A DNA stretch of 64,000 bases from Mizuhopecten yessoensis (lineage: Eukaryota): the NCBI RefSeq assembly GCF_002113885.1, contig NW_018408322.1, positions 910,570 to 974,569 of the forward strand, written 5' to 3'. The notes beneath the pieces are model-generated. The model was not told the DNA's origin. It did no database searches and saw only the letters and a program-made list of their open reading frames with translations. The position numbers and the translations under genes were made by a program. Position 1 is the first letter of the stretch. The number at the start of each line of letters is the position of its first letter. Positions 18,901-50,801 of this stretch are shown one piece after another.

Positions 18901-19069
18901 ATAGACCACATACGTACCTATATGGAACACAGCTATATTCCTATATTATATGTAATAAACATACATCTATGAACATCAATCATGACGTCATCATGAAATA
19001 ACAAACCATCATAAAAACCTTATAATTATGTAAAATCAAAAAGATCACGGTTATCTAAAATAATGATGA

Positions 19070-27200: not shown

Positions 27201-30200
27201 TAATAACAGGAAAATCCTTCTTGTGAAGAAGAGCAAATTGGGAGGGAAGAAAAGAAATGTACAGCCTTAGTCAAGACAATAACAAATAGGATACGAATAA
27301 TGAAGGAGTAGAAGAATGCTGGCTGTAATTCTAAAATTATCTTCCTCACTCACTAAACTCAAATATACCAACTCAAACTACAAAATCCAATGGTTCAACA
27401 AAAGGATAAGGAAAATGCTGCAGGAAAAACAAAACCTCTACAATCAAGCTAAAACGACTGACCAAATATCATCGCCATAGGCCTCTTGGTTATTGAGAAG
27501 AGGCCGTATAAAGAGTTTTAGACATTCAACCCCTATGACCTTGAAACTAGGTCAAGGTCAACCATTTTCACAAACTTGATAGCCAATACCTGAGCACTTT
27601 ATCTGTTAAATATCAAGACCCAAGACCTTGTAGAACTTAAGAAGATTTTTTGAATGTGTTACCCAAAATAGCAATTTTGAAATTTGACCCCTGCCGAAAA
27701 CTGGCAGTTGACATTTTACACAAAAATGTTTCCCGAGAAAAAGTTTTCTATTGTTAGGGTTAAAAATATATCCAAAGATGAATTTAATATGTTCAGCCAA
27801 TAAAGAGTTATGGTCATTAAGGTAAAAACGGATATGACGTCATGGCGGCCATTTTGTTTTTTCAAAGAAGTCAATAACCTAACCAAATTCGAAACACTAT
27901 CTGAGAAATTTTGTATTCGATAAATAATTGGAAAAATATCTCACAGATATTGGAGAAAATTGATTTTAACATATTGTCGGCATTTCAAAAAGATCGCAGG
28001 AAATTTTCAAAACGGCGAACAGTGCAACCGGAAAACGTTTTAGAAAAACTGAAGACACCAAATACATCGGAATGACATACTGCATTTCAAAAAGAATTTT
28101 TCAAAAGTATTGAAAATTGAAAAAGTGTTGACCTTTGAACCAACAGCGAGGATTTTTATTTGACTTTTTTTGTAANAGACTGACCCAAATGAAGCACTAT
28201 CACTCCTATATAACATAATATTGAAAATCCTAGATAAACATGCCATGATGAAAACTAAAAGGGTCAAACGAAACAAACAGCCGGAATGGTTTAACGAGGA
28301 CATAGCCAATGCAAGGCGCTTACGAATTTCATTCGGCAAAGGATTGGGATAACTATAGGTTATGGAGAAACAAAACTAATTTGCTAATACTAAATTCAAA
28401 GAAAGTTAGTTAAAAATGCTGTTACTGATCACAAACCTAGCGCCTTACTTTGGAAACACGTAAAATANTTAAGGTAAAAACGGATATGACGTCATGGCGG
28501 CCATTTTGTTTTTTCAAAGAAGTCAATAACCTAACCAAATTCGAAACACTATCTGAGAAATTTTGTATTCGATAAATAATTGGAAAAATATCTCACAGAT
28601 ATTGGAGAAAATTGATTTTAACATATTGTCGGCATTTCAAAAAGATCGCAGGAAATTTTCAAAACGGCGAACAGTGCAACCGGAAAACGTTTTAGAAAAA
28701 CTGAAGACACCAAATACATCGGAATGACATACTGCATTTCAAAAAGAATTTTTCAAAAGTATTGAAAATTGAAAAAGTGTTGACCTTTGAACCAACAGCG
28801 AGGATTTTTATTTGACTTTTTTTGTAATAACATGTATGAAGAAAAGGCTAGCCATGTAGAATATCTACAAATAATATAATTGCATGACTGCTGTACAATA
28901 AACAGTTTTTGAGTTATGGCCATTTTAAGATTTGACCTATGACGTCATGGCGGCCATATTGGATTTTTGATCTCCTTGAAAATGTTGCAATGACACCTTT
29001 TGACCTTTGCCTACAATATACTTATAAGATTGTTCACAAATCTGCTACTAATCAAAAGATTAGGCGGCAACAAATTCAGGAAAGAAGAATAATAATAAGA
29101 AGAATAAGAAACATAACAATTCTAATATAGGTTATGGAGAAACAAAACTAATTTGCTAATACTAAATTCAAAGAAAGATATGTTAAATAATACTGTTACT
29201 GATCACAAACCTAGTGCCTTACTTTGGAAACACGTAAAATGCATGTCATCCAGTGAATCTCGAAGTACTATTCCTACTCATCTTAAAAAAAAAATAACGA
29301 CATGACCATTACTGATAAACAAGTAATCATAGGCAGAATAAATATGCATTTTGTTGATGTCTCCAATATGGTCGATAAAAAAACACTGGATTATAATGAT
29401 CATTTTGTGACGNTGGACTTGGTCCAAAAATACTTAAAATTTGCAACCATATTATATCTCCATATTTAAATTATATCATTGATTTGAGTATATCAACGTC
29501 CATCTTTCCATCGCTCTAAAAATAGCAAGAGTGACACCACTACACAAGGGCGGAGATAAGGATATTCTAGATAGTTACAGACCAATATCTATTCTACCTA
29601 CTATATCCAAAATATTTGAGAGACATACTTCAAATCACTTATATAAATATTTATTGAAGTATGACCTTTTGCATAGCTCGCAATCAGGCTTTCGAGCGAA
29701 ACACTCATGTCAGACTGCCCTAGTTAACCTAATTGATAAATGGATTGAGGGTATTGACAATAATGAAGTAATTGTGCCTTTGACTTGGTGGATCATGACA
29801 TTCTTCTACATAAACTTAAGATACTAAATTCTCTAGCACCAGTGTAAACTGACTAACATCATACTTAGAAAATAGAGTGCAATCTGTCAAATCAAACAAT
29901 ATTTCATCTTCACCTAAAGTAATTAGGTCAGGTGTTCCTCAAGGCTCAAAACTTGGGCCGTTACTATTCATTATATATATAAATGATATGCTATTATATG
30001 TACAAAATTGTTTGATTGACATGTATGCGGATGATAGTACAATGCATTTGAAGGGAGATAACTCCTCTGCCATTGCAGATAATCTCCAAGATAATCTAAA
30101 TCATATAGTGAGATGGTGTGTGAATAATAACATGAAATTGAATACAAATAAGACCACAAGTATGGTAATAGCCAGCAAACATAAACTTGCAAATCTAAAT

Positions 30201-33200
30201 CCATTACGTTTGGTAGTAGACAATGACGAAATTGCGTCTTCCTCCTGTCAAAAGGTTCTGGGTATGTATATTGATAACCATCTAAGTTGGGTAACCCAAG
30301 TGAAAAAAGTATCTTCCAAATTAGCAACTTCTGTTGCACTTTTGCGTAGAATGGCAGGCTATTTGAATCAAGAAGCCCGAAAATTTTACTATAACGCCTA
30401 TATATTGCCAATACTGGACTTTGCTGCTATTGTGTGGGGAAATGGTTTAACAATTGAACAAGGAAATTATATCACTAAAATCCAGAAAAAGGCTATACGT
30501 ATTGTATTAAATAAGCCCATCTTAACTCCAAGCATTGAACACTTTAAATAATGTGATACTCTCTCTTTTAATTACAGAGTTAAATATCATACTTGTATAT
30601 TAGTATACAAAGCACTAAATGATTTAGCACCAGGCTACATTAAATCTAACCTAAGTCTATGCCATGATACATATAACTATGGGTTAAGATCAACTTCTCA
30701 TAATAATCTAGTTATACCAAGACACAACACTGAATTATTCAAAAAATCTTTCAACTATACCGGTGTTGTGTCATGGAATAATCTTCCAAACCAAATTAAG
30801 AATGATATAACAGTCTTCACGTTTAAAAAAAATCTCAAGAGTCACCTATTGTCTCTTTACTTAAATGGATAAATGAACATTATCAATTTCATGTTAATAA
30901 AAAGTTTGGTATTGAAATTCCACAGGACACTGTCAAAACCTATAATGTAAGGTTCCACATATGCTGTTAGTATATGCAAGATATTGTTGGACATACGTTA
31001 CCATAGACATTACAACACATGTAATTCTAGTCAGTTTACAGTAATCTCATTAATGGATTGTGTTTGTAGATTGTAGTTATATCATATCATTGTGTTATGT
31101 AATATCTTTATGCATTCATGTACTATATGTGTTTGAGGGCCGCATGGAAGATTAGTCTTGTACTAAATGTGTAACCCCCTTTAAATAAAGTTATTATTAT
31201 TATTATTATTATTATTAATAGGTCTTTTCACCTGTTGGCGAAAAGCCCTAATAACTTCTATCACTTCCAAAAAACAACAACTCAGAAATAAGAAAAGCTG
31301 AAAACGAATATGTAAACAAAGTTCAAGATAGACAAAATCATAACAAATGAAAACCATTCTGGAAATACATAAAATCAAGGAATCAGGATAACATAGGTGT
31401 GGCAGCACTAAAATCACGGGACACACTTGTCAGCGACAGGAACAGCACAAATCATACTTCACCAGTTCTCATACATCTCCACCCGTAGTAACAACAACAC
31501 GCCAAAACACGTATACACGTAGAACATTCGATTTCTATGGTATGGTGGCATATTTCTGCCATCGAGTTGCCGACTTGCGACTTAGTGATGTCGACATAAT
31601 TCCTGAATTATGTCGACATAATATGAGAAGATGTTAACATCACAGAAGACGATGTTGTCCTAAACTGAAGAATATGTCGACTTGCTAATTTACCGGCCAA
31701 GATAATAAATCCAAGATAATTGTCTAGCAAGTCGGAAAGTTGACTTTATATCGTGTTCGTGCTCGGATATGACACCAGTTTGTCAGTTGTTTATGTCGAC
31801 ATCTAACTAGAAGATGTCGAGATCTGGTCAGATCTTCTCTCTTGTAGGTTTCTCTTCGAAATAGACTGGATTGTCTACCGTAGTTTCAACTCTCCTCCAG
31901 GCTTCAATTAGCGTCTAAGTGCGCAGTTTAGTGGGAAAAATGGTACTTAGTCTGACAATCCAGTCTAGATTCGGAATTATCAAAGAGCGCAGCCTATCGG
32001 AGAGAAATGGTACTTAGGCAGAATATCGAGTTGAACTGTTCATTTCTTTCTTTTTTGATAAGAGAAAAACGATTCGTAGTTCCTAGTGAATTTACAATAC
32101 ATATTGTTTTCAATTTGCGCCAGTTTGGCTTAGATTAATACGGGATCGCGCTAGCATTAGTATCATTTCTGATAAAAATAATCTTTTAAATCAGCTAATG
32201 ATTACGATATTTTGGTAGAAGTCACATTTCTGATCTTTTCGTAAAAATCTTAAATCCGTCTTTCTATTATTGATTCAAAACAAGCTACGTCATTACCTCC
32301 ATTGGCTCTACCGGTGGGATGAAGACGTCTGACGTCACCATGGCAGGTGTATGATACTGAAACAGAAAGCAATTTACAACAAGAATGATGAATTTATATT
32401 CCGGATATAACGCCTGGAGAGGGATATCTAAATCTCGATATACCCGTTTTTTAATGCGACTAAGCCTTTCCGATTTGAAATGGCGTACCATTGGTTTTGT
32501 TGTTGATTTTGGTTGATAGAATTAATTCTTTTTCGTTTATATACACCTGAAAGTCATTTATCTCAAAATATATACTGGAGAAGGAATTTTTCAAAGTTGT
32601 TTCGGGATTTTTTTTTTATGAAATTTTTTGAAAGACATATTCATCAACATAAAATTTGAAAGACGTAAACATTTTGGGCTTTTCCTTTAATTTGTTACAA
32701 AGGCGTCAGTGCAGCAGGATAAATAAACATTATGCAAAGATATGAAAATTAATTTTACAATCATCTTTTCCTTACAGTATTCAACGGTTTTAATGGAATA
32801 TTTTTTCTTGCAACAAACAATCATGTAAATAATCCGACACAAACTGTTGAAAAACAGCAAAAAGATCCGTTGTACGTTCATATTATATTTTAGATTTGGG
32901 ACATTCTTTTTCATTTTTATATACGTATAGAAGCAACGGTTCAGGTTCAGGTTCCTTGGCAGATTCCCTCGTTGTCTTGTCGAGGCACCGCTACTTCCTA
33001 GTAGCGTAGAATATCGGCTCAGCAATAAAATCTGTACAGATATGTACACAGTCAGGGCGTATGTACACAGGGATCAAAAACTAAAGAGTTCTATTCTCTT
33101 CCATAAAACATAGTAAAGTTTATATGAAAAATATCATTAGTTGGTCTGCCATTCTCCTCTGTATCTAGTTCTGCAAGTAGCTTAACTCGTCGTAGATGGA

Positions 33201-36200
33201 TTTCTTGCAAGTATTCTCTACTGTGAAGTTCAATTTTGTTGATCTCATCATTGTTAAAGACATGGATATCGCTGATCTCTGGGTGTGTGCAATCTAGTAT
33301 CAGATGAGTGAATTTTGTAGGATTTGAAGTCAGTTCTGTATATTGCTGGAATACTTTGTAGTCGAAGATAGGCATGACCCCTTATTCTATCGTATGCTGT
33401 ACACACGGCAATGAAGTGTTGCCGGTCCTCTGGCCCTGTATGACATAGTCTGCATTCCGGGTTGACGTTGTATTGGTTGACGGCTGCTCTATTTGCCTGT
33501 ATGGTATATGTGCCCTTGAGGAGTCTTGTCTTGCATTCGGCTCGTTGGACATCGTGTTTGTTATTTCGCACTGTGGAGTAGACATGGTGAGGTTCTTTCA
33601 AGGTAACGGAATCAGGGTTAATGTATTTGAGTGACGATTTGGTGGCGAAATCATCTTTCCAGCTGTCTTGAATATGCGTAGATATCCCCCTGTCTAGCAT
33701 CTCTTTCCATTGACTTTTGAGTGGAAGATCTTCGAGGAGAGTAAATGCCGTTAGAAGATTGTACTGTCCCAGGAGGTTCCTCACATGAGAGAACTAGCTA
33801 TCCTCGTCTCTCGATCTCACTGCTAGTTGACGGTATGCTATAGAGTACTCTATGGAGTAGGGGTTGGTAATGATTCTGTAGAAAAGGTTCAGTGTGTTTC
33901 TGTCAATGATACAGCTCCAAGTAATGCCAGGGATATAGATGTTGCTGTCCTGTCCGGAAGATGTTGTACCTGTCTTAGTGATTTGGTCTGGAATCGTTCC
34001 AGGTCTTTCATCTGCGTTTTTGTGTAGTTGAGTATTTCCATTCCATATGTGAGCCTTGGGACGACATAGGTTTTCCAAAGATGAGCTTTAACAAGTTGAG
34101 ATGATCCATTCTTCCCATGAAATCCAGATCCCATGAGTGAGTAAGCTGTTTTCCTTCCTGTCTGGACAGTTTTCTTGCAGTCTATGGTGTTCTTGCCATT
34201 TCTAAGGACTCCAAGATGGGGTAACTGGTCTGTTATCTCTATTGGTTCATCATATATGGGGAATGTTTCTACATCTTTGGTGTTGTACAGTTTTATCTTA
34301 CTTTTTGAAGGGTTCCGTAGATATCTTTCTTGAGTTAAATGATTCTCTACCCTGGTCAGCATATGTTTCATGTCGAGAACCGTGTGAGCTAGAAGGGCAA
34401 TGTCATCCGCACATGTTGTGTGTGGGATTCTGATGTATCCTATATTGGCTCCCTCGCATTTTTCTTCCAGATCCTTCAGTAGGGGATTGTTAAAACGTTT
34501 GTAATGAGATGTGGAGAGTACTCCCCCTTGACGGACTCCTTGTCGAATAGTAAAGGGGTCTGAAGTCTGTCTCTCCCACTTGACGCCTGATGTGACATCT
34601 TTGTAGAGATCCTGAATCATCAGTCAGTCAGCGCCCGTGATTCCGTCGGCATAGAGCTTGTTTAAAAGAATATATTGATCCACGACATCGAATGCCTTCT
34701 GTGCATCGAGTGTTGTTAATAGAAGAGGCTTTCTTTGTAGACGGGCTTCCTTAAGGCATTCTGTTACGATGAGAGCTGAGTTGATAGATGATGAACCTTT
34801 GGTAAAACCGGTCTGTAGTTTGGATTGTGTTGGATTCAGGATAATGTTATGTCTGGCGTTGAGAATATGTTCCACGATTTTAAGTATGACTGTGGTAACG
34901 GTGATCCCACGGTAGTTGGAGGGGTTTTTCTGATCTCCCTTTTTGTAGATTGAAGTAAGTAGTCCAGATTTCAGCATTGCCGGTACTTTCTTTTTCTCTA
35001 GCATACTGTTGATAAGAGTTTTTAGGTAGGGAATTATGGTATCTCCAGACATTTTGAAGTATTCGCTAGTCATTGCCATGCTGTCAGCTGCTTTGTTGTT
35101 ATTTAGTTTTGAGATGGCTTTCTTGATTTCGGAATCTGAGGCCGGTGTTATTCCAGCTGGTTCCTGCTCACTGAGTATGTGTATAAGGTTTGTTGTTTTA
35201 TCAGCAATCTCTTTGTGGTCCTCCTTGAACAGTATGTTTTCCGAAGGGGTTGCCAGTCGTGAAAAGTGCTTGTTCCAGCAAAGAAGGCCCTCATCTGGTG
35301 TTGTATAGGTTACTCCGTCCAGCATAAGTGTTTTTGGTCCAGTAGCTGAAGTCTTCCTCTGTGATTTTACCAATTTATAAAATAGTTTCTGTTCCCCATA
35401 GGAGGTTATTATATGATTGGTCCATTCATCTCTCTTCTTGGCTGATTGTTGCCTCTGTAGTATCTGTAGGGTCTTTTTTCTGTTCTTCATATCCGGGTAC
35501 AGTAAGTTGGCTACATGACGAGGTTTTCCAGCTTCTTTCCATTTCCACATTGCTTGCTTACTGAGTTTTGCTGCATGCTGTATCTCATCACTCCATGGTG
35601 CTTTCTTTTTTCTCTTTAGTTGTATGATAGGTTTGTAGTTGGGTATACTTCTTGACGTTGCGTCTGATAATGTGCCTGTTAGATGCTGAATTGCCGATAT
35701 GGTTTCAAATTCATTAGCTGGTGTTTTTAGGTGATCCAGGTTATTTTCAATATATCTGTGGTAACTTTCGGGTCGCATTTGCTCCAGTTTGGTTTGTTGT
35801 TGATTGTTGTGGTTTTGTCTGTTTATCTTGTGTGTAGATCTAATTCTAGGATTACCGGGATATGGTCCGAGTGGTTGGTTGGGTTTTCCTCCAGGATTGT
35901 GCATTTTGACACCATACTCTCACCTTTCTTATTGAAGAGGACATAGTTAATTTCAGCAGTGTCCTTAGCATTTACATGGAAAAAGGTGTCAGTTCTGCAT
36001 TGTGCTGTTTGTAGATCCAGGTCCTTGCAGAATTTATACAATAATTTGTCTCTGTAGTTGTTGGGGCGTAGTCTGAGTGAGGCATTCATATCCCCGCAGA
36101 TGAAAATGGCATGAGTATCAAACTTTTGTATAATTTCCTCAATCTCATCTAATGTCTCTTGGTAGGCTGTCTCGGAGAGTCTCCCTCTACATGGCATGTA

Positions 36201-39200
36201 TACATTGATGATACAGACTGGGGGGTTTGTATCTAGTTCTAAAACGGTGATTCTTTCACTGCCGTCAGTGTGATGGGTGTAATTCACATCCATATCCTTT
36301 CTGTGCAGGGTTGAGACTCCACCATAGCTCCTCGGAACTTGGAGAGGGGATATAGGATCTTTGGAATCAGCAAACTTGGAGTGTGGATGGTGGGTGCCTG
36401 TGCTAAGGAGTTGATGTTGGAATTCAAAGAGCCAGTGTTCCTGTATACAAAGTACATCTGTGGTCTGTAGAAGTTGTTCTAGATACAAGCTGTTTGACTG
36501 GATATTTTTTATATTGAAGGTGCCTATATTGATTGATTTCCTTCCTTCCGCCAGTGTCTGTTTGCTGCACGGCCATGCCGTAAAAAAACCTGCCCTGTAG
36601 TATTGGAGTCATGGCTGTTTTTTGTTGACGACGGTTCATTCAGAGTGTCGTTGACAACCTTGGCTGTGATGCTGCTCGTATCAGGGTCCGGCATATGGAC
36701 AAGTTACGGTGGGGGCTCAGTCGTGGCAAGTTTTGCTGCGGAATTTTCATCTGCAAATATGACCTTTTTAGGAGTTGAGTGTGGCGTCAGGTGATGTAAT
36801 TATGACGATGTGGTATTCCTCCTTGTATCTACAGTACCAGATTCAGAGCGTCGTTTATGAGGAGGTAAGTATACCGGTTGACCTGTTGTCGGTTTTCCTG
36901 CTTGCCGTCTGGGGGGAATATTTCGTTGTGGATATATGCTTTCCTTAGGGGTCCCCGAGGGTTGGCTCCTTGGTCGTGAGGGTCGATTCTGGTCCCCCTG
37001 ATAACTTGTTCTTTGGGTTCCTCCCCACGTATTGGTGTGTGTTGTTGGCGTGCTCATATGATACGGTTGTGTTGATACTGCAAAGCCTTGACCGCTTGTA
37101 AGTACATGGGGGTGTACCGGAAGTTGGTGGAAATGAGGAGGTATCCCTAAGTACGGTGGTGGTGGGAGTGCCTCAACGGAAGTGTCCTGGGGTCAGGATA
37201 AAACTGTGGCTGTTGAACCATATAGGGTGTATAGTTGGTTGGTAGACGATGATAGTTGTCAAGTTTATTCTGAATTACCATCATATTCTCTATGCTGTTG
37301 ATTCTAGACCGCATTTGATCCATCTCCATTATCTGTAGTCGGTTTTGAAGCATATTGACTGTGTTGTGCATATCTAGTTCCATGGTACGTGTGCTTGTCC
37401 TGGTCCATGTCGATGGAGTTGCTGCCGGAGTGTGGTCTACCGTATGGTGTTTTGTTGTGGACTTCAACCTGTTTTTGCCTTTGTTTTGGTTTTCCCTTTG
37501 CAGTTTTCTGGGGCTGCTTTACTGGTATGTCTAGATTGTTAGAGTTTAGGACTGGCGACAGTTCCAATACCTTTGTTGTGACTGTTGAAGGGCCCATTTC
37601 TCCATCTGCTACAATAGCCTGACATGTATCGGAGTCATGTGTACCTCGGTGGTTGTTGTGGTCCATTGTGGTGGTCTTTATCTCTGTAGTACCTTCTGTT
37701 TCTTGATGTGCGATAGGCGGTCTAATTGAGATTTTAGTAGCGTCATCTTGGTATGTTTTGATGTGTACTTCATCATCTCGACCAATATCCATGGAGTCCG
37801 GTTCAAGTAGCGAGGTAATATGGATGTTCATATCGGAAATTTGAAGAGTTTCTGATCTTGCAGTTAGATGTCTGCATGATAGGCAACTGTAGACGGTATC
37901 TCCTTACTCATAAAAGTCTATGAAGTTCTGATCTAGGTGTTCACAATCATAATGGTACCATAGGGAGCAGACGTCGCATTCAAGGCCTACCTCTACATGA
38001 AGTTTACAATGTGGACATAGGCTTATGTCTTCATTGGTGCTGCATTCAATGTCTGGTATAGCAACTTCATTGCAGGTTTTGTGACCAGCTCCAGCCATAG
38101 TATGTTCAACTTCTGGGCATAGGGGGTCCCCATATATGCTAGTGTGTGCATCTGGTTTGTCAATACTCTGTGCTAGACATCTGTTTATGAGTGCTGCGAA
38201 GTGTCTGTCCAGTGTTGACATATTTGGATTCTGTTTTACAGCTTCTATGATGTCGGGTAGAATCTCATTTTGAAATTGTGGTGTTCCTTTTATCAACAGT
38301 GAGCATTGGGTATGGTACATGTTGATTGTGAATTTATGTCTTTTTCCCGGTTGTGAGTTTTTAAGTCTGTTGTTAGCCTTTATTATGGTTTCCGGGGAGT
38401 TTCCCTGTTGATCGTGGACCATTTCCAGTGCAAATGACATGTTGTACTTGTCCATAATTGTCTGGTCATTTGTGGCAGAGATGATTTCTGACTTGATCAA
38501 TTCCTAGCACCCGGTGCTGCATTCAACTTTGAGTTGATTGCCTCCATCTTTGGGGATGATGTTTATGAATGGAGTTTCACATTTGTCCTTTTCTTTTTTG
38601 AAGTGAGCGTTTTTGGTTCATGGTATATGATTTGGTTCTGGTATGAGGGTTGATCTGATAATTAATTAAAGGTGCAAGTTCATTATGTTGGTCAATGTTG
38701 ATTGTACATACATCAGTGGAAGCCATTATCATGCTGTCCGCCATCTTGGGTATACCCTGCTTGTACGTTGTAATGGTGATGGAAGTTTTTTGGCGATAGG
38801 TTGTAGTATGGCATACGGTCGGAGAGTTATGGTGATACAGATTGGTACAAGTCACTTTTCCAAATGGATTTTACATACTTCAGCTGTTAATGTAGATCGG
38901 CTTTCATGAATACAGGTTCATCGACGTGGGGCCGCCATCTTGGAAAATTAGACGACAGCTCAGTCTTCGTCGAGATACAGGGCAAAGGCAGACACTCCGT
39001 CACCAAGGGCCGGGGCGGTAGTAATTTTAAAAGTGAAATGGATATAAAAGAGTCAATGCGGCCTCTAAAACGCAGTAATTTAAAAGCAGTCTATTTTCTG
39101 CAACAGGGGAACGGTTTCCCGCCACTATAAAATGGGGTAGGACACATAAAAGTCAATAAAAACAGTTCTGTACACTTACTACACCCCTAAAAATATAGCT

Positions 39201-39500
39201 GTATGCTATATACCTAATCTAAAAACTTTATAAAGTCAACTGTAGGCAGGTGGAGCATTAAAACCAGTTAAAATCAAGCTAAAAACAGAGCAGATAAAAA
39301 AAACACGTCTTCACTCCACCGCCGTTAAAACCACCACGTCATATCTGAAACAACATACAATCTATTTTACTTGATTTTCTAGATTTGTTTTCCTTATTTC
39401 TATAACAATCCCCAAAAATAAAGAATAAAATATTTAAGAAAGTACCTGCCCAGGCACAAGTGCTGATAGCAAGAAGCGTGACTATCACAAGCAGGTTCAT
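21299..39500 (-). CDS. lyg: Goose-type (g-type) lysozyme, copy A, 6 coding exons, 201 aa, secreted
   Basis: Exons on the minus strand: 39446-39500, 32297-32356, 26505-26594, 23696-23808, 22838-22985, 21299-21438. All introns GT-AG with compatible phases; total 606 nt. Protein: [201 protein letters not shown]. It has a signal peptide, catalytic SRES Glu, and the GWGD, GILQCD, AYN and [10 protein letters not shown] motifs of g-type lysozymes. Confidence 0.96.
23200..23470 (+). mobile_element. Tc1/mariner transposase C-terminal fossil in lysozyme intron 4
   Basis: [18 protein letters not shown]...W..R motif, matching the mariner YSPDLAPxD box. A more degraded copy lies at ~54780-54900 in copy B. 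Confidence 0.7.
23970..25330. repeat. 26-bp minisatellite (aaggttcatacagatatattctattt)n in intron 3 of lysozyme A
   Basis: Roughly 50 tandem copies. Confidence 0.95.
25750..26500. repeat. 32-bp GC-rich minisatellite (acattacgccgtgcccgtctggtcgtgtactg)n next to the exon 3 donor, copy A
   Basis: Roughly 23 tandem units running up to the exon 3 donor at 26504. Confidence 0.93.
27470..31254 (-). mobile_element. Non-autonomous Helentron-like element split by the CR1/L2 LINE
   Basis: Terminal inverted repeat taggtcttttcacc..ggcgaaaagcccta at 31219-31250 continues into the (aag/aat) microsatellite at 29080-29128. Internal tgaccttga/aggtcaaggtca and tgacgtcatggcggccat motifs at 27470-29080. Confidence 0.6.
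29129..31216 (+). mobile_element. 5'-truncated CR1/L2-group LINE
   Basis: RT motifs [33 protein letters not shown] and MYADDS (ORFs 29531-29827, 29877-30551). 3' end is aataaag followed by a (tta)n tail ending ~31216. Confidence 0.9.
31862..31968. repeat. Short inverted-repeat element
   Basis: tagactggattgtc ... gacaatccagtcta, a perfect 14-bp inverted repeat. Confidence 0.55.
32939..39335 (-). mobile_element. Near full-length degenerate non-LTR retrotransposon (RTE-X-like) in intron 1 of lysozyme A
   Basis: ORF1 fragments 38855-36800 with a PHD finger ([16 protein letters not shown]). ORF2 fragments 36488-33091 with APE endonuclease (CIQEHW, GDMNA, SDHIPV), RT ([25 protein letters not shown]) and a C-terminal CxxC..H..C. 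Short (gaacct)n tail. Empty site in copy B at ~57940 (gaagcgacgtcatatctg); acg appears on both sides. Confidence 0.9.
33889..36488 (-). pseudogene. LINE ORF2 (endonuclease + reverse transcriptase), frameshifted
   Basis: ORFs 35823-36488 (APE), 34624-35904 and 33889-34620 (RT motifs). Confidence 0.9.
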
Positions 39501-39552
39501 CGTTGGTATCTAGCCGACGAGACGAATGTCCTGAAGTCTAATCAAGGCCATA

Positions 39553-40011
39553 AACCACAGACCACAATAACCCTTCCGGGTCATTGTAGTGAATGTAGTG
39601 CATAAGGACATTTCAGGTGGGTTACTAAATAATTTTTCCTGTCTGAATTATGACAGATATGTACAGATTTTTTACATGGAATTGTTCAACAATATCTATT
39701 CTAGTGATTAAATTTTATTTGACACTGTTTCCAAGTTTGTCTTGGCACCAGGACACAATGAGTGATGAGGCTTTCGCAGTGATATTTTGTGATTTTTAGT
39801 ATTTTCCCCTTTACATGCAGGGTAGTGACATTCAAATAAAATTATCTTTCTTAAATGCCGGTCATGAGGTACTTTCCAGCTCACCGTACGTTCAGTTTGA
39901 ATAGATCTACAATATGAAATAGGAACCAGGCCCTGCGAAAAGTTTTAAAATATTTTAATAATTTATTTCCTTTGGTATAACATATAGTAGAATTAATTGT
40001 GGTCTGAGGCC
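39553..40011 (+). repeat. Left long terminal direct repeat of the composite transposon
   Basis: Near-identical to 45047-45507; ends attgtggtctgaggcc; outer TIR is degraded (aaccacagaccacaat). Confidence 0.92.
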
Positions 40012-40037
40012 TGCATAGCAGAGAGTTATGCCTCAGG

Positions 40038-40129
40038 CAATCGCAACTTCTCGGCCAATTCCGGCTAGGCGCGGAAGGCGCGGCGCGGAATCATATGCCT
40101 AACCGGAATTGGCCGAGAAGTTGCGATTG
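40038..40129. repeat. 92-bp GC-rich hairpin with ~33-bp arms
   Basis: caatcgcaacttctcggccaattccggctaggc ... gcctaaccggaattggccgagaagttgcgattg (1 mismatch). Confidence 0.85.
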
Positions 40130-40402
40130 AGTCAGGCTCATCGGAAACTTCCGCTGTAGCCGGCACGTTTGAACATGACAGGCTGGAATATTGAAGTTAA
40201 AGGTTTGTACTAGCTGTCAGTGAATGTTTTGAATGAATTTGGATTTTATAGAACTTATTACAAAATAATTAATGTGATTTTAGGTAATTTTATGAGACAA
40301 ATTAGGAAGTTTAGATAGGAACTACAGCTATCCACGTGTTTATAAACCAGCAGTTACTTTCATTTTAACTAGCTTTTGACATTTGCGACAACTTTCTGAA
40401 AA

Positions 40403-40813
40403 ATGGAAGATTTTTGTTTAAAGTACAGTGAAATTTTAGACAAGAAATGTGTTGTGTCAAGTAATGGCCGATGTGTTATTTGGACAGGACCGGTGACACA
40501 CAACAGCAAATATGGTGTTGTTAGATACAAGCATCCAGATACCGGTGTATCGAAAACAGTTACAGCACACCGGTTAAGTGTTATAATGCATACGCAAAAT
40601 TTAAATTTAAGTTCGGACTTTGATGCGTCACACCTGTGTCACAACAACCTCTGTGTAGCGATAAGTCATATAAGTATGGAACCACACAGCATCAACAATA
40701 ACAGAATCCACTGTAAACATTTAAATAAGTGCACAGGGCATGGGGAGTTTCCTGATTGTTTACTGGATTTACATATACAGGTACATTACCTGAAATATTA
40801 TATACAAATTTAA
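40403..40813 (+). CDS. His-Cys box / His-Me finger (homing endonuclease-like zinc-binding loop) nuclease encoded by the transposon
   Basis: Open 136-aa ORF with CxxWxG..YG, AHRLS, SHLCHNxxC..H..E...N..R..C....C.GH...C motifs, typical of the I-PpoI-like His-Cys box family. Confidence 0.88.
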   Translation: MEDFCLKYSEILDKKCVVSSNGRCVIWTGPVTHNSKYGVVRYKHPDTGVSKTVTAHRLSVIMHTQNLNLSSDFDASHLCHNNLCVAISHISMEPHSINNNRIHCKHLNKCTGHGEFPDCLLDLHIQVHYLKYYIQI

Positions 40814-41031
40814 ATTTTACCTATATACAAAGCAATATTGAGCACGGCTCAAGCTCGGCTCATCACATGCATAATGACAAGATTTTATTTTTGTTATTTT
40901 TCTTTTTATATGTTTTGACAATATTTTTACTGTGGTAATATTACATTACTAATGAGTTTTTCTACTTATGATAATTGTGCTCATCATTGTTGGAATGCAG
41001 TCTACTGGTTCTGAGGTCAGGGGGGGGTTAT

Positions 41032-44000
41032 CTAGCTGCCCTTTTTGTAATCAGATCTTGCCCCCTTGTTCTGAATATGTCTCTGAATGGCTTCTGCTTT
41101 CAGTTCTAGGGTCCTTTTTTTGAAAGCTGAGCCCTTTTGATACTTTTGGTGGTAATCTTGCTCTGCTTGTATTTGCTGCAGAGAGCGTCTTACCTCAGGT
41201 GCTACAGTTGCACCGAGGCACTCCATTTTTGTCATAAGGGAATGTTCCACTCCATTATTACCTGTGTGAACAGCTCCATGGAATCGCGCGTTCATATTTC
41301 TGCTAAATAACACATTTTTCGGTAACCGGCTATTCAGAAGCCTGAAAAAGGCTTTGCATCTTTGGGTATTTGCCCCAAGTGACATTGCTGTGACATATTC
41401 ATCTGTCAACTTCATTTTCAGTATCTTGAGCATCAGGTGTTTGTCATTTTCATTCATATTCAAGCTGTACAGCTTGTATTTAGACAGGAATATGGGCCTG
41501 TTCCACCAAGTACCAGTACTAATACCACCATTGCATACAAATGAGTATCTTTTACATCTAGAACAATCCCCGCTGTAACATCGAAGGGTGGCATCTAAGA
41601 CAAGGGGCAGTTTTTCGGCTGGTTTTTGTCTCACCGTTACAATCCTTTGTAAGCTCTTTACAGACTAGGCTACATCGAGCTTTTATATCACGGCTTAGCA
41701 CCTTTTGGGATTCTATCTTTCCTTCTCTTGTTTTCATACCTGGGAACATGTCTGCTAAAATGTGCACGCATACATTTTCTAAATTGTGCTTGACCTAAAT
41801 GGGTTGGATCTGCTAGTCGTTTCACATCCCACATGGGTATAAATGCTTTATAAGCTGCGTCAAGACCTGCTACTGATCGCTCGTCCCCATCTGATGTAGC
41901 GTATCGTACAATAAGATCTTGCTGGTATAGCTGCTCACCTACTAGCTTAGCAGCCTCAAATTCTGACAACGGTGTCCCCACCCCTATTGTGGCACTACAG
42001 TCTATATGGCCACCAGGGCATTTTGCATCAAACCCTTTTCTGCGTAACCATTTACCTTTCCAGCATATTTGTGATTGGACAGCTATCCTTATAATGTAAT
42101 TTTTGTCAGTGACATCCTCGCGAGCTATAAGTGCTAACTGTGTAGCACTTGTACCAGGTTTATTACGACAGGTTATTGTTGACCTATTGTACCTGCCATC
42201 AACTTGAACATTAACCATGTTAGGGTCTGCAGCTCCCCTCAACTCCTTTATTTCTCTTACTTCCTGTGCTTTGTTTGCCATATCCTCCTTATTCAATGTT
42301 ATGATTGTTTCTGCTGCAATATTAGCATTTCTCTGCATACTGCTACGGCACGTGGGAACCAAATTCATAGCATTGAACAAACGCCGTGCCCCTGCTGGCC
42401 CCATAGATGTTTTTTGGAGGCCGGCATGCATTGTCAGATTCGGGACAGCAGGGTTTGGGCCCCTTTTAGGGGATTGAATCTCTTTGTACATTTTTTGATT
42501 GTTAGACACCCAACCACATGTTTTGCATACTACTTTGAATTTACATGTTACTCCTACTTTTACCTCTTTGTGAATGTCAACATCTGGATTGTCACACCTG
42601 TGTGACAAGGCAATTTGTATAAGATCACCTATTTTTAGGTCACCTGAGCTTTGCTCAAGTGACCTATTCCAATCACTTTCCGTTCGTCGTCGTGCGTAAA
42701 CTTTTTACATTATCAACTTCTCAAGAACCAGTGGATGGAATTTTTTCAAATTTGGTCAGAATCATCCTTGGTAGATGAGGCTACCAAATTGTAAAATTGG
42801 GATTCTTACCCCAACCCTAGGGGCCAGGGCGGGGCCCAAAAGGGAAAATTAACTAATATTTCAAATATCTTATTCTCCAGACTCAGAGGTATTACAGTCA
42901 TTTTCTCTGCATGGATGGAAAGATCATCAGGGGCTTTATTTAAATTGTAAATTTCAGGACCCCCGAGCTATCCGTTCTCCCTTGGGGAGGGGGTAAAGTT
43001 TACTATAGTTTATATAGGGAAACAACACTTTTGGGTATATTTTGACAATTTTCTGTTGGAAATTATTTTTACTTGGTCAGAATCATCCTTGGAGGAGGAA
43101 GATGGTTTTAAATTGTAAAATTGGGATTCCTACCCCAACCCTAGGGGCCAGGGCGGGGCCCAAAAGGGAAAATTAACCAATATTTCAAAAATCTTCTTCT
43201 CCAGACTCAGAGGTATTACAGTCATTTTCTCTGCATGGATGGAAAGATCATCAGGGGCTTTATTTAAATTGTAAATTTCAGGACCCCCGAGCTATCCGTT
43301 CTCCCTTGGGGAGGGGGTAAAGTTTACTATAGTTTATATAGGGAAACAACACTTTTGGGTATATTTTGACAATTTTCTGTTGGAAATTATTTTTACTTGG
43401 TCAGAATCATCCTTGGAGGAGGAAGATGGTTTTAAATTGTAAAATTGGGATTCCTACCCCAACCCTAGGGGCCAGGGCGGGGCCCCAAAGGGAAAATTAG
43501 CCAATATTTCAAAAATCTTCTTCTCCAGACTCAGAGGTATTATAGTCATTTTCTCTGCATGGATGGAAAGATCATCAGGGGCTTTATTTAAATTGTAAAT
43601 TTCAGGACCCCCAGGCTATCCGTTCTCCCTTGGGGAGGGGGTAAAGTTTACTATAGTTTATATAGGGAAACAACACTTTTGAGTATATTTTGACAATTTT
43701 CGGTTGGAAATTATTTTTACTTGGTCAGAATCATCTTTGGTTGATGACGGTATCACATTGTAAACTTGGAATTCCTGCCCCATCCCCCAGGGGTTAGAGT
43801 GGGGCCCCAAAGGGAACATTTACAAATATTTCAAAATTGTTATCCTTTGATGACATGACAAGTACTGTATTTCACTTAGTTTACATGCTGATTTCCACAT
43901 CACATCTAAACAATAAAATAAAGCTACCAGTACCTATGATATAGCTCAGGTGACTGCTAAGGCCCTTGGGCCTCTTGTCTTAGAATCTATTAGTCTGTTA

Positions 44001-44332
44001 CCCTGATTTTGAACACCATTATCTAACCTAGACCTTTTTTCCCTATTTTCATGGAGGTGTGATGCAACTTCTATCACTGGTTGTGGTTTCTTGGGCCTAA
44101 GGTGCTTGACAATGCCAGGGTTACCTTCAGTGTCGGGAGTGCTAGGAAAGCTACAACCAGGATGCGTTACAGTGACTAAGGAATACATATCAGAACTCAG
44201 TCTCTTCCAGGTACCTGAGACATTTTCACTTGGAACTTTACTCACCCCATGCCCTGCAGTCTTGGTACCCTTATTATGTGGTGTATTACACTTTTTGACT
44301 ACATTTTTACTTCTCTTATACCTTCCCTTCAT
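41032..44332 (-). pseudogene. Disrupted DDE transposase (Kolobok/Mutator-like domain)
   Basis: Fragments 44332-43980, 42631-41688, 41767-41558 and 41634-41032. Motifs CKTC, VQVDGRYN (D1), YATSDGD (D2), DPTH and NTQRCKA (expected catalytic E reads K). Two frameshifts, and interrupted by the 42632-43979 insertion. Confidence 0.82.
42632..43979 (+). mobile_element. Non-autonomous Helentron-like (HINE) element carrying ~3 tandem ~323-bp repeats, inserted in the transposase
   Basis: 5' tttttaggtcacctgagc..gctcaagtgaccta inverted repeat, cgtc microsatellite, repeat units starting ~42752/43074/43397/43721, 3' subterminal ctcaggtgac, hairpin aggcccttgggcct. Inserted in a T-run. Confidence 0.78.
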
Positions 44333-45046
44333 GGTCCTTTCAGGTCAAATATCCCTATCTTAATAACTGCAATACTCAAAAACACCTATATTTACCTAAA
44401 TTGACTATAAACACATATGTTCTGAATATTTACACCACTTAATAAGGATTACAAGCCCACAGGGACAGGATATCTTATCCCTTTGTCACACTGGTATTGG
44501 CCCCTTGAGAGGTGGCACTTGCTTACCTTGCTATGTTTGACATGTATTTACTAAATAATTAGTAGGGCTATAAACTTACAATTACATTCATTTTGTAGGG
44601 GAGAAGTCCCCTTATACAGTGGTATAAGGTTAGACAGGCTGTGATGTCATATAGAAAAGTTATATCATTAATAATGTGTAATTTTTACTTGAAAATTGTG
44701 ATTTTTGAAATTTCATAATTAAAAGTCCATTAAACTTTACTTCTTTTGAAATTTTATAAACTGCATGTAAAATGTGAAAGAGTATTAAATAAGCTTTAAT
44801 TTGATATATGTTATTGATATATTACTTAATTATTACTCGCCCAATAGTCATTTATCTATGAGACCTCTCTGAAATATTAGATGCAGAATACAGCATTGCT
44901 GTGGATTAGGGGTAGGGGAACTAAAAATGAAAGAACTTTTTTATTTTTGGAGTAAATTTCACAATAATTTGCAATAACATTTGTAATTGCATGCCAAATG
45001 TAATGATAGAATAAAAAAAATATGTCTCCAAAAATCACCAAATACA

Positions 45047-45507
45047 GGCCTCAGACCACAATAACACTTCCGGGTCGTTGTATACGAATGTAGTGCATAA
45101 GGACATTTCAGGTGGGTTACTAAATAATTTTTCCTGTCTGAATTATGTCAGATATGTACAGTTTTTTTTACATAGAATTTTTCAACAATATCTATTCTAG
45201 TGATTAAATTTTATTTGACACAGTTTCAAAGTTTGTCTTGGCAGCAGGACACAATGAGTGATGAGGCTTGCACAGTGATATTTTGTGATTTTTAGTATTT
45301 TCCCCTTTACATGCAGGGTAGTGAAATTCAAATAAAATTATCTTTCTTAAATGCCGGTCATGAGGTACTTTCCAGCTCACCGTACGTTCAGTTTGAATAG
45401 ATCTACAATATGAAATAGGAACCAGGCCCTGTGCAAAGTTTTAAAATATTTTAATAATTTATTTCCTTTGGTATAACATACAGTAGAATTAATTGTGGTC
45501 TGAGGCC
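45047..45507 (+). repeat. Right long terminal direct repeat of the composite transposon
   Basis: Starts ggcctcagaccacaat and ends attgtggtctgaggcc, a perfect 16-bp TIR pair. Confidence 0.93.
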
Positions 45508-47188
45508 ATCTTCGGCAGACAGTGTGCATATTTAGAATGGCTTACACTAAGGTCCCTCTTGGTCAGTCACGTATATTATTGCGTACGTGTCCATTCATTA
45601 TCCGTTACTGTCTGAACGGGAAAACACAAACTCACTGGATACTCACAAAATATTATTTACCAAATTTGATAACTTATACCTTATTTAGTTTATCTCCGAC
45701 ATAAGCCAATAGGATTTTCGACAAATATATCTATTTTATATTCCATCACAGAAATATTAAATCTCAATGAAAAATCTGAATAATTTGGGTTAAAGGGGTT
45801 TGACATTGCAAGGGGAACTAACTGCTGTTTTCGTATGAATTAATGTATTAACAAGGTACTATAATTTTCCTGCAATTCGTAGTTTAGCAGGAAACATTTG
45901 TCTGTTCAGGTTCGACCAGACACATGTACAGCTACTCGTGAATATTCATGAGTTGTTTGTAGGGTGCACGAGTTATCGGGCAAAGTACTAGGGAGTAGTG
46001 AGCAGGTGTATAGAGTGGTCATTCTAGCCTCGAAGCTCACAGCATACGGTCAATGTTTATTTCAAAATTTTGAATATTTTGTAAAAAAAAAATCCCAAAA
46101 AAATTCAGATGTGACGACAGCAGTTTTAGAGATTTGTTTTGTTCTTGTGTCTTGATTGACAGATCAGTGGAGATATTCTAAGCGTGAAGCAAACAAATGT
46201 TGTACATTTCATTATACCTGCATTTTATATACATGTATATGTATTACAATAGCTAAGTGTTTAGCGTCAGAAGGTTTTCCAGAGTTTTTGCCTTATCAGT
46301 TTTATCTCTGGTTTTTAGCCCAGGACGTGAGAACACATTGATTGTTGGTATTCCAAGTGAGTGAGAGAGTTGTTGTATACTTATACATATATTGTTGACT
46401 CTCGTACATGTGAAGATGATGAATGAATAAACGCCGCTCCATAGAGGCCTTCAATGAGCAGGCTCATCCTATTTCATAGTTGTGTTATTGATTGTGTCTA
46501 GATAGGTAGACAGGTAGGGCTACTGTCCAGTATAGGACAGACGTGGAGATACATACATGTGTACCTATGTACACGGTATCTACACAAGAACATAGAGATG
46601 CACACATGCACAAACAGATTTAAGCAATCTTCCCCATCATTGGGTACCTAAGACACAGTAAACTCAACTAAAGTTTAAGATTCTTAAATGGCTAGCCTGA
46701 GGCTTTGCCGAGTTTAACATTCGTGCTGGACAGCCAAACTCTTACCCTCAGGTTAAGATTTCCCTGTCCACGAACCACACCCATGAGGTATTTTTCATTG
46801 AATCTATATTCTACGAACGAAACAAAATATGTCCCGATGATATCCAGAATCGGGAGCCATGGAATTTCTCAAAATAAATTATAACGAATAGTCTCCAATC
46901 GTATATAAATGTTACTTGTTGTAATTGCGGTGAAGGTTCTCCTTGTGAGGAAATTAACAAGACAATTTTTTTCTCGATATAATTTTAGTAACAAGGAAAG
47001 TATGAGGAAGTGCTTGAGTAAAAAAGCGACTAGCTTATACATATTCCCTCTATTTATTTGAAGTTGGCACTTCCTAATTGCTAATTGATTTTTTGCCATG
47101 TATAGCCGATTATTCCCCATATTGATGTTCATATTCATAGCGGAAGTATAACTTGAAATAGCCTAGCTAGTTCTACCCCTGAAATATG

Positions 47189-50100
47189 TAACTAATCATT
47201 ATATTATGTTTGTACGTTGCAGGTAGCAGTCATCCTTTATTTAAAGAATTCGAAAGAAAGGAAGATGTTAATTCTCATTTATGACTGCTACCACTATGTA
47301 TACATCCCCGACACCCAGCCAGGCATGGATTAGGGTTATCGCCTTGTCATCAAGCCATCGTTCATCACTCATTTTTGCCACATCTTAGGATCACATCATG
47401 CCAGTGTTACAGTGCCCTGTCGCAGGCTGTATATGGACGTCTCAAGACCTGGCAGCAGAATTTGCATCTGCCCTCACTGCTTCTCTTCAAATTCATGACA
47501 GGACCGTCCATAGAACCCCAGCAAATCCAACACCACCAAAGCTCAAGTTAGACCCACCAATTGTTTCTGCTGGATGTGACCCAGACCAATGGTCAGCTTT
47601 TGCCAGGCAGTGGAACATGTATAAGGTTGGAATGGCCATTACGGAGACTGTTCTCCCCACTGCGCTATTCTACTGTTGTGACACTGATCTACGGACAGAT
47701 GTTCTACGTGACCTTCAGTGCGATGTAGCTAATATGGCTGAGGCTGATCTATTAAGAGACTGGCAGTTAAAGATGAAAGCACTGACTCTACACGGTCAAC
47801 ACGCATACTTTGCTATGTATCTGACACTATGGAAAAGGCTTTCCTTTGCAGGGAAGCGCTCATATCTCTCGGGGTCATTCACATGGACTTCCCCAATGTG
47901 CCTACGGATGTCACCGCCCCAGTTGAGGACTCTGAGGAGATAACTTGTTCTTGTCCCAGGCGTCAAACGGAACCCCCAACACTGCCGACTACGCTACCCC
48001 CAGGACTACGGGCCACAGAAGAGAACATAGGGACTCTCACAGATTTGTTTCTTGACTATTATGGTTCTACAACCTTCAATGTCTGTAAGCATCAACCATT
48101 GCCTCTTATGAAGGGTGAGCCCTTACAGCTCCATGTTGATCCCAAAGTTAGGCCGGTGGTACTTGTCCCAATTCATTGGCAGGATAAGGTCTATGCTGGT
48201 ATTGAGAGGGATGTTCGCATCGGTGTTCTTGAGCGCGTTAGTCCAAACACTCCTACAACATGGTGCTCGAGGATGGTTGTGACTGGGAAAGCTGACGGGA
48301 CTCCACGTCGTACTGTAGATCTACAACCTCAAAATCGCCATTCTGTCCGCCAGACTCATCATGTGCCTGGCTCCTTCCATCTGGCAGACCGTGTTCCTCA
48401 ATGTACGAGAAAAACGGTAACAGACACCTGGAATGGGTACCACTCTGTGCCCATCCAAGAAGACGATCGACATATCACTACCTTCATCATGCCATGGGGG
48501 CGATATAGGTTCAAAGTGGCTCCACAAGGATTTCTCGCTAGCGGTGATGCTTACAACCAGCGCTTTGATGCAATAATTTCCAATTTCCGGAAAAGATCAA
48601 GTGCGTGGATGATAATTGCATGTGGGCAGGGTCCATTGAAGCGGCATTCTTTCAAGCATGTGAATGGTTTGACCTGTGTGCTCGAAATGGCATCACACTT
48701 TACCCAAAGAAGTTTCAGTTTGCCCAGGACACCGTTGACTTTGCAGGACTGACAATCACTCCAACAAACATTCGACCTAGTGCTAAGTTCCTAGATGCTA
48801 TCAGAAATTTCCCCACACAACGGATATCACTGGTGCCAGGGCATGTTTCGGGCTTATTTACCAGGGTACGTATGCCTTTGCCAGGACAGGACAGGACAGA
48901 TGAAACCTTTTCAGACTCTGCTAAAACAATCTACAAAGTTTGTCTGGACAGATGAGCTGGACCAGCTATTCAATCAGTCCAAGGAGGTCATCATACAGGA
49001 GATGAAGGAAGGGGTGCTCCTGTTTGACCCTGACCGATCGACTTGCTTGGCTACTGACTGGTCCGTTGATGGAATAGGGTTCTTCTTGATGCAGAAGTAC
49101 TGCCAGTGTACTGGTAAGACTCCCACTGCTGCCCTGATGGTTGGAAGCTGTGTTTAGTTGGCAGCAGGTTTACACATCCTGCTGAAAGCCGCTATACTCC
49201 CATTGAAGGCGAATCCTTGACTATTGTTTACACACTACACCAGACTCGCTATTACGTGCTAGGATGCAAAGATCTACTCATAGACACGGATCAAGAGCCA
49301 CTACTTCAGATCCTGAACGATAGGTCACTTACAGATATTAGTAACAGACGACTTCTTAGCCTCAAGGAAAAAACTCTTGGGTACAGGTTCACAGTTGTAC
49401 ATGTTCCTGGAAAGAAGAGCCAAGGTCCGGATGCTACTTCTAGATACACTGCCTCCCCGCCCGAGCACCTACAATTGCCTGGCGAAACTTTGGAATTTGA
49501 TATGAATGACAACACATCTATCCCATTTCATGACACCCTGAATAGCCTTTGCCAGCATAGTGAGAACGAGGACATGGCTAATGACATAGGATTTCATCGG
49601 TCGCAAATCCACATGCTAATTGCAGGGCTGAGATGGCAGTGCAGACTGTAAACCGCATGCTCATGGACAACATAACCGCGTCTGGGTCTCTCGATGTGGA
49701 CAAGTTTCAGAGGGCCCTACTGATGTACAGAAATTCCATTTACCCGGAGACAAAGGCATCACCAGCGTTAGTTTTGTTTGGTCGACCCATCCGTGATGCC
49801 ACCCCAATACCGATGGGTAGATACTCACCTCATGAAACATGGACAGAGCTAATGTCCCATCGAGAGAAAGCACTCTCCAGACGTCATGCCAGGGAACATG
49901 AACGGTGGAATGAACACACTCACCGGTTACCACCACTGCAGGTTGGAGATCACGTCTACATACAAAACCTGGCTGGAAACCATCCTCGGAGATGGGAACG
50001 TACAGGGATTGTTGTGGAAGTGCGTCAGTTTCACCAGTATGTCATCCGTGTGGATGGCACAGGCAGAGTGACTCCGAAATCGCCAGCACCTTCGTAAGTT

Positions 50101-50801
50101 CTCTCCCTTTCATTGCACTACCTCTTGGGCTGCAGTATCACGCCTACGTCAGATGAACGACCGCCTCCGGAAGCGCCTTCCGGCGACAAAATATCTGCTC
50201 CATCCCTAGTGCCACAGCTGGACCAACCTACAATACCGTTGTCACCACAGGCCCTACAGGCTCCACTTCCCTCGCCATCACCACATGTGCGACAGTCACC
50301 ATCTAACAGGATCAGGCCACAAGCTACCACCCCTACACAGGAGTCTCTGTCAACGCGACATCGATTGAATTTTGATATGACAGACCATCAAACTCCCAAA
50401 CTTGTTGAGCCTGTGGTGGCTCGTACCACGAGCTCTTGCCCGTCTTCAACCTCATACTAAGGCCGTAGTAAAGGAACTGGAACAACCACGAATACTTCGT
50501 CATTGCACCATGGAGGAAGAGTCAGGACTTAGGGGGCCTGAAAAACTAAAGTGACTTTTGTGTGTCTGGATTATTTTTGAGAGACTATCGTTGTGCTTGT
50601 TTTTGTGATCAGTCATTAAGGACAGATGACTTATTCAAGTTATCACTCGGAGACCTGGCTTATCAGTTTTCTATGTTCCATATAAAACTTGCCCTTGGGG
50701 GAGGAGATAACTAATCATTATATTATGTCTGTACGTTGCAGGTAGCAGTCATCCTTTAGATTAAAGAATTCGAAAGAAAGGATGATGTTAATTTTCATTT
50801 A
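47189..50801 (+). mobile_element. Ty3/Gypsy LTR retrotransposon, internally deleted, with 93/94-bp LTRs
   Basis: LTRs 47189-47281 and 50708-50801 (TA...TA ends). 5-bp TSD atatg at 47184-47188 and 50802-50806. PPT gggggaggaga before the 3' LTR. Gag fragment from 47398; RT (WCSRMVV, RRTVD, DTWNGYHSVP, PQGFLASGDAY, xDD); RNase H (TDWS, DTDQEPL); integrase C-terminus (ALLMYRNS, SPALVLFGR). Empty site in copy B at ~59605-59620. Confidence 0.92.

Follow-up and report, generated by a model that had tools for sequence, protein, structure and literature searches.

In the window analysed here, a 64,000-nucleotide stretch of the genome of the scallop Mizuhopecten yessoensis, a mobile element lies directly in front of one of two g-type lysozyme genes (copy A), and RNA contigs of this gene begin with sequence of the element. 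Transcription of copy A probably now starts within the left terminal repeat of the element, at about position 39572 (probability roughly 0.6). By this reading, the transposon destroyed the core promoter of a gene for an innate-immunity/digestive enzyme, for which it appears to have provided a new start. The tandem paralogue, located 18 kb away and free of the insertion (copy B), represents a natural control.

The lysozyme gene pair and the insertion site

Copy A extends over about 20.4-52.6 kb of the window and copy B over about 52.7-61.4 kb. A self-comparison of the window aligned 39336-39552 with 57943-58161 (83.5% identity) and 45508-45835 with 58175-58500 (91.8% identity), and detected more collinear A/B blocks on either side of these two matches; copies A and B are therefore tandem duplicates, of which copy A is heavily expanded. 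The features of the gene pair that are needed below are as follows.

39446-39552, minus strand: host part of exon 1 of copy A, with the 5'UTR (39552-39501), the ATG at 39500, the signal peptide, and the donor site (GT) at 39445-39444
32297-32356, minus strand: exon 2 of copy A, with AG acceptor and GT donor; joined to 39446 in RNA contigs
45508-45835, minus strand: displaced native promoter block of copy A, 92-93% identical to copy B, with a TATA-like sequence (TAAATATG) at 45534-45527
58162-58174 (in copy B), minus strand: 13 bp that are missing from copy A, with the predicted native start site; AGATAAG at 58178-58172

Exon frames of copy A were similar to solved structures of g-type lysozymes (GH23), i.e. 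those of cod (3gxk, E 1.8e-7) and of swan and goose (E 2.5e-10), and they also matched the g-type lysozyme chains of ostrich and salmon. The solved structures replaced Pfam for the identification of the lysozyme, because Pfam searches with single lysozyme exons yielded SLT matches below the cut-off only, as is expected for queries that are single-exon fragments. All six exons are open in both copies when the exons are read separately; read in the same way, copy A contains the catalytic glutamate in SRES and the acidic residues of GWGD and Q-x-D, with the ASRESRGG (SRES) and GWGD motifs in the frame at 23869-23681 and with CD where the next exon begins. The known g-type lysozymes of scallops (Chlamys farreri, Argopecten irradians and Mizuhopecten yessoensis) likewise have a signal peptide and the SRES, GWGD and QxD motifs, and the C-terminal block GGIAAYN... 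is common to known scallop g-type lysozymes and copy A. Partial lysozyme proteins that were retrieved from RNA assemblies with the exon query comprised relatives at 64-79% only, and not copy A.

Copy A spans 19 kb, versus 5.4 kb for copy B, and has received many mobile elements. Its intron 1 is longer than that of copy B by 6.5 kb, and the additional sequence represents a degenerate non-LTR retrotransposon (LINE; 32830-39335) on the minus strand, i.e. in the orientation of the gene, with an AP-endonuclease, zf-RVT, and a reverse transcriptase that is split into two pieces. The upstream part of copy A also contains 93-bp direct repeats (94.7% alike) that enclose a segment of about 3.6 kb (47189-50801); this segment has no equivalent in copy B. 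Long minisatellite arrays were found at 7517-8362, 17736-18908, 23963-25449, 25773-26469, 56242-56745 and 63081-64000, two of them within lysozyme introns; the array at 25.8-26.5 kb and at 56.2-56.7 kb starts where the third coding exon ends. A 359-bp stretch occurs twice, at 27817-28175 and 28469-28827 (652 bp apart, 100% identity), which points to a recent duplication or to an artefact of the assembly.

On the plus strand, the host sequence of copy A reads ...caaggccata up to 39552, followed by the element (39553-45507; 5,955 bp) and by host sequence again (atcttcgg) from 45508. The start codon of copy A (39500-39498, minus strand) follows the junction at a distance of 52 bp. A preliminary description of this DNA had placed the insertion about 50 bp from the start codon and the promoter about 6 kb away from its gene, and both values agree with those measured; the conserved upstream block also begins at 45508, as described, and matches copy B from 58175. 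The uninterrupted site in copy B is located at 58156-58182 and reads gccatagagcatatgtcttatcttcgg; the coordinates given previously (58157-58183) were one base too high. Thirteen bases of copy B (58162-58174, gagcatatgtctt) are without counterpart in copy A, consistent with the loss of 11-13 bp noted before. The sequence CTTATCT (AGATAAG on the minus strand) is found at 58172-58178 in copy B, and its reported destruction in copy A was confirmed, with only AGAT being kept; chance alone would yield a GATA-type 6-mer about once in 500 bp, and the significance of AGATAAG is without statistical support.

The 4 bp on either side of the element are unlike (CATA on the left, ATCT on the right), i.e. 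the insertion is without a target-site duplication. The earlier observation that a TTAA duplication is absent holds in the wider sense that there is no duplication of any kind; its reference to TTAA is not relevant, since the element is not of the piggyBac type, a reading that was rejected because the repeat family makes 4-bp duplications of varied sequence. The left boundary of the element is uncertain by about 5 nt, since the AACCAC at the start of the left repeat (GGCCTC in the family) represents either mutated element or residual host sequence.

Copy B contains a TATA-like sequence (TAAATATA) at 58199-58192 on the minus strand, and its native start site is predicted 25-35 bp downstream, at about 58164-58174. 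This prediction falls within the 13 bp that are absent from copy A, which would make it likely that the initiator was removed there. The element appears to have split the TATA box of copy A from the 5'UTR, TAAATATG and exon 1 now being 5.95 kb apart. From 6 kb away, the displaced native block may still act as an enhancer.

Anatomy, family and class of the element

The element comprises two long terminal direct repeats and an interior with several coding and nested sequences, as follows.

39553-40011, plus strand: left terminal direct repeat, 457 bp; 8 private changes in its first 40 nt
45049-45507, plus strand: right terminal direct repeat, 457 bp; K2P 0.040 from the left repeat
40012-45048, no strand assigned: interior; nested inserts apart, it is common, at about 95%, to the full sister copy (C4568) and to a few fragments elsewhere
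40036-40136, no strand assigned: nested palindromic insert of about 100 bp with 27-bp inverted arms; the sister copy is without it
40403-40813, plus strand: ORF of 136 aa with a match to the His-Me finger endonuclease zinc-loop (PF05551, E 8e-9)
41032-42608, minus strand: Mutator-like transposase in two pieces (306 aa and 200 aa; PF20700, E 8e-47); a pseudogene
42632-43978, no strand assigned: nested 1.35-kb repeat in which a 324-bp unit occurs 3.2 times in tandem; splits the transposase gene
43946-44332, minus strand: N-terminal piece of the transposase, 128 aa, corresponding to the beginning of the sister copy's 672-aa ORF

Each terminal repeat is tipped by a 16-bp inverted repeat (GGCCTCAGACCACAAT). 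The repeat family is represented by at least 162 candidate copies in the genome, and the units that flank the element are mobile on their own: 12 of 30 inspected family copies are single units with clean 4-bp target duplications, and these duplications vary in sequence (ACAT, AATT, ATAT, CGGT, ACTT, AGAC). The term composite transposon, under which the element had been described, is fair for this anatomy, in which solo-mobile units bracket a centre; as a mechanism it is not proven.

The left and right terminal repeats differ by a K2P distance of 0.040 (0.032 without the first 40 nt), and the non-coding blocks of the A and B duplicates by 0.074-0.119; the insertion is therefore considerably younger than the gene duplication, if the repeats were identical at insertion. 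In the left repeat, 8 of the 14-15 private changes are located within the first 40 nt (binomial p about 1e-5). Such clustering could have arisen from an imprecise insertion or deletion, or from later change around the new start.

The upstream block was found in two copies only (A and B) in the 988-Mb genome, and this search yielded no insertion-free allele or haplotig of copy A; the assembly is thus without an empty-site allele. The share of the words of 39400-39600 that DNA runs contain ranged from 0.57 to 1.00, and two runs from other samples and other studies (X2 and X3) contained 0.95, so that the junction words are present there. These data bear on an explanation that we regard as hardly probable, namely that the allele expressed in the RNA donors contains a solo repeat, with the native block only 457 bp upstream and still driving transcription or strongly assisting it. 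The direct repeats are 96% alike and thus substrates for recombination, single units constitute most members of the family, the variable word share among the DNA runs would be accommodated, and the RNA covers the left junction only, which is common to both alleles. However, neither a solo nor an empty allele was encountered, and the genome contains the upstream block as A and B only; the two additional DNA samples contain 0.95 of the words, a share that does not distinguish a full element from a solo repeat.

Many single 457-bp units of the family are without a target duplication and have TGCA(T) after or (A)TACA before the unit, the flanks being otherwise unrelated. TGCA(T) was found on the right side at L005, L008, L014, L017, L024, L026 and L027, and (A)TACA on the left side at L007, L009, L021, L022 and L026; the interior of the full element likewise begins with TGCAT and finishes with ATACA. 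No second repeat was found within 10 kb of the TGCA/TACA-flanked single units at ten such loci. A pair of repeats on C2988 was considered as another composite and rejected, being rather a 99.8% identical duplication across an N gap and probably an assembly artefact; the two stretches (L002/L004, C2988:38426-45548) are 99.8% identical over 1,960 bp, with an N run between them.

The only full sister copy of the element (C4568) has flanks that differ from those at lysozyme A and contains an intact 672-aa transposase ORF (PF20700, E 4e-55 over profile positions 1-357, i.e. the whole profile). Sequence of the interior was also found on C3051, C5393, C2599 and C76745. Its left and right repeats are 98.5% alike and have 3 derived sites in common, and there are no left-left or right-right sites shared between the two full copies; the repeats of C4568 are each other's closest relatives, which represents LTR-like behaviour or gene conversion. 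The nested 1.35-kb repeat is not present in the sister copy. This repeat occurs in very many copies across the genome (3,421 candidates at first look, with 90-98% identity; also L035-L044), and an 8-bp overlap in the sister copy suggests that it makes an 8-bp target duplication. The 3' repeat of C4568 is split by a 2.6-kb insert (L046, 4694-7291) with a 4-bp overlap, and this insert includes a 99-bp piece of the 457-bp repeat family.

The element fits no standard class: its architecture, in which a Mutator-type transposase is framed by direct repeats that have inverted tips, is odd and is flagged here. In C4568 the two direct terminal repeats are closest to each other, which is a feature of the LTR type. 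A canonical LTR retrotransposon was ruled out by the termini, by the lack of a primer-binding site and of a polypurine tract, and by the coding content: the repeats begin with GGCC and finish with GGCC, and not with TG...CA termini; neither a TGG-type primer-binding site after the repeat nor a purine tract before the 3' repeat was found; and the interior contains no reverse transcriptase or gag/pol genes, its coding content being a Mutator-like DDE transposase and the His-Me nuclease-like ORF. The Mutator-type transposase (PF20700) is found in both full copies. The remaining anatomy is not that of a Mutator-like element: the inverted ends comprise 16 bp only, the long repeats are direct, and the flanks of both full copies (lysozyme A and C4568) are without an 8-10-bp match, a target duplication being missing at both.

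Transcripts of copy A and their 5' ends

The RNA evidence consists of Logan contigs, which show neither the start nor the end nor the level of a transcript. The runs were picked for containing copy A words, and no inference is drawn on level or tissue; four runs were aligned to 39100-41100 at a likeness threshold of 80%. Runs X13-X17 were guessed to be RNA, a guess that is supported by their spliced contigs, and X19 is a certain RNA run. Words of exon 1 of copy A were found in seven RNA or probable-RNA runs; five probable RNA runs (four studies) contained 0.52 of the words of 39400-39600, which is approximately the share of exon 1, and two certain RNA runs contained 0.29. Two features adjoin the 5' end of these transcripts.

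39553-39572, minus strand: 19-20 nt of element sequence at the 5' end of copy A transcripts; the RNA contigs stop at 39571 and 39572
39573-39579, minus strand: ETS-type motif CCGGAAG, outward-facing, directly upstream of the RNA 5' ends

At its 5' end, the mRNA of copy A carries element sequence, which continues into exon 1, and exon 1 is spliced to exon 2. One contig of X13 (record 1, 390 nt) covers 39446-39572 and one contig of X16 (record 9, 221 nt) covers 39446-39571, both with 0 mismatches and both stopping at the contig's own end; contig depths were 16-41. Copy B differs from copy A at 10 of the 107 host positions of exon 1, and these contigs are therefore from copy A. The loose end before 39446 (X13 and X19) corresponds exactly to exon 2 of copy A (32327-32356) and has 2 differences from copy B. 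Copy A is thus transcribed, and its 7.1-kb intron 1, including the degenerate LINE, is correctly removed. Spliced copy-A-specific contigs were obtained in at least three RNA data sets, which refutes the silencing of copy A that had been put forward as one of two outcomes of the insertion. The coding exons and splice sites of copy A had been described as intact, which is in accordance with the open exons and, for the junction of exons 1 and 2, with the RNA.

Copy A might be functionally crippled, with low-level aberrant RNA from a cryptic site, and copy B might carry the lysozyme function; we consider this improbable. The removal or displacement of the TATA box, the predicted start site and AGATAAG would be in line with such a fate, as would the load of mobile elements in a gene of 19 kb (5.4 kb in copy B) and the modest contig depths, but copy A has retained six open exons and its catalytic motifs, the splice across the 7.1-kb intron is exact, and transcripts were assembled in runs of several studies. 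Furthermore, no copy-B-type contig on exon 1 was found in X13 or X16, at the 80% threshold and in runs that were selected for copy A.

The ends of the X13 and X16 contigs lie within 1 nt of each other, which suggests a real 5' end. Copy-specific bases of the left repeat (39553-39557, 39572, 39583 and 39589-39591) render the 31-mers unique up to about 39620, and a break of the assembly at 39572 caused by the repeat is therefore unlikely. Position 39572 is itself a variant site (C here, A in the family), and a polymorphism there could have broken both assembly graphs. The second outcome proposed in the preliminary description, drive of copy A by the terminal repeat, fits the contigs, which reach 19-20 nt into the left repeat and no farther. 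The description had named an upstream non-coding exon, which would make the element merely intronic, as contrary evidence, and no upstream exon joined to exon 1 of copy A was found in the RNA contigs.

A start farther upstream is rather doubtful; it could be located elsewhere in the left repeat, in the interior (by read-through from the transposase gene on the same strand) or at the displaced native promoter, with the contigs being truncated. Such a start would be compatible with contigs that do not define ends, with the variant site at 39572 relative to the repeat family, with an A/T-rich, TATA-like stretch at 39624-39638, and with the abundance of the repeat family in RNA contigs at 39591-40104. 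However, the RNA contigs on the repeat, among those listed, have 2-26 mismatches each, and none is joined to a lysozyme contig; the cleanest (2 mismatches) was traced via its loose end to C4568, and they are therefore from other copies. RNA depth over 40105-40908 was zero in X13 and X16, which argues against read-through from upstream, and the agreement within 1 nt of two runs of different studies, at a place where 31-mers are locus-specific, is also contrary to a start farther upstream.

For a start at about 39572, within the left repeat, the ETS-type motif is the candidate promoter feature. The stretch reads CCGGAAGTG in the family consensus and CCGGAAGGG in this copy, and CCGGAAG is present at the equivalent place (repeat positions 21-27) in 21 of 29 family copies. 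Neither a TATA box nor an Inr was found at the expected distance from 39572; ETS-type motifs are of the kind that sit at the start sites of TATA-less promoters. The true start site would be located at about 39572, and the ETS motif would drive initiation.

Tandem duplication of the g-type lysozyme gene would have come first. The element would then have landed in the core promoter of copy A, 52 bp before the ATG, with the TATA-like box on one side and the predicted start site on the other. During or after the insertion, the target duplication would have been lost along with about 13 bp of the host sequence, and this copy of the element would have decayed later, through nested inserts and the breakage of its transposase gene. 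Copy A remained active, with transcripts that would begin about 20 nt inside the left repeat, beside the outward-facing ETS-type motif, cross the old 5'UTR, and are spliced normally over the 7.1-kb intron 1.

Meaning and comparison with known systems

The 457-bp family as a whole might be equipped with a portable core promoter of the ETS type, which faces outward about 20 nt from one end and would have taken over initiation at lysozyme A, with the cluster of eight changes as later tuning and with regulatory subfunctionalisation of the paralogues; this wider reading is tentative and on balance unlikely. If it were true, the more than 160 other copies would constitute a genome-wide reservoir of ready-made start sites, and the duplicate would have been kept alive under new regulation. 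Re-seeding of a promoter may require no more than a short ETS motif at the end of a transposon. The locus represents a concrete and testable case in a mollusc, a group in which regulatory effects of mobile elements are little documented, and it bears on the regulatory divergence of duplicated immune genes. A scallop g-lysozyme promoter was analysed by He et al. 2012 (PMID 22366552), as cited in PMC11576321; the published 'promoter' may or may not be transposon sequence, so that the case may also be of practical relevance.

In its anatomy, the element resembles bacterial composite transposons (IS-cargo-IS, as in Tn5 and Tn10), in which a short, self-mobile unit likewise brackets a centre in two copies, and, as in these, the whole scallop element occurs at a second locus with other flanks. 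Unlike in the Tn5/Tn10 type, the scallop element encodes its transposase in the centre instead of in the bracketing units, these units are direct rather than inverted, the full copies are without a target duplication, and the repeats of C4568 are closest to each other. With MULEs and the animal Phantom-type elements it has in common a central ORF that matches PF20700 over the whole profile; in contrast to MULEs, it has neither long terminal inverted repeats nor an 8-10-bp duplication, and its short units make 4-bp duplications.

Promoters derived from transposons are known, for example the IAP at mouse agouti A-vy, LTR alternative promoters in mammals, and Accord upstream of Drosophila Cyp6g1. 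The replacement of a promoter by a mobile element is thus known in kind, and it is unusually well documented at scallop lysozyme A. As in transposon-initiated chimeric transcripts, the element is located immediately upstream of coding exons, the 5' end of the mRNA is derived from the element, splicing to the downstream exons is normal, and the native promoter is displaced. In contrast to the known LTR cases, the donor in the scallop is an end of DNA-transposon-like type, associated with a Mutator-type transposase, and not an LTR with a known U3 promoter. The scallop case also differs from the known cases in that the element replaces the only known core promoter instead of adding an alternative one, that the start would be located only about 20 nt inside the element, and that the host gene is a bivalve immune/digestive gene duplicate.
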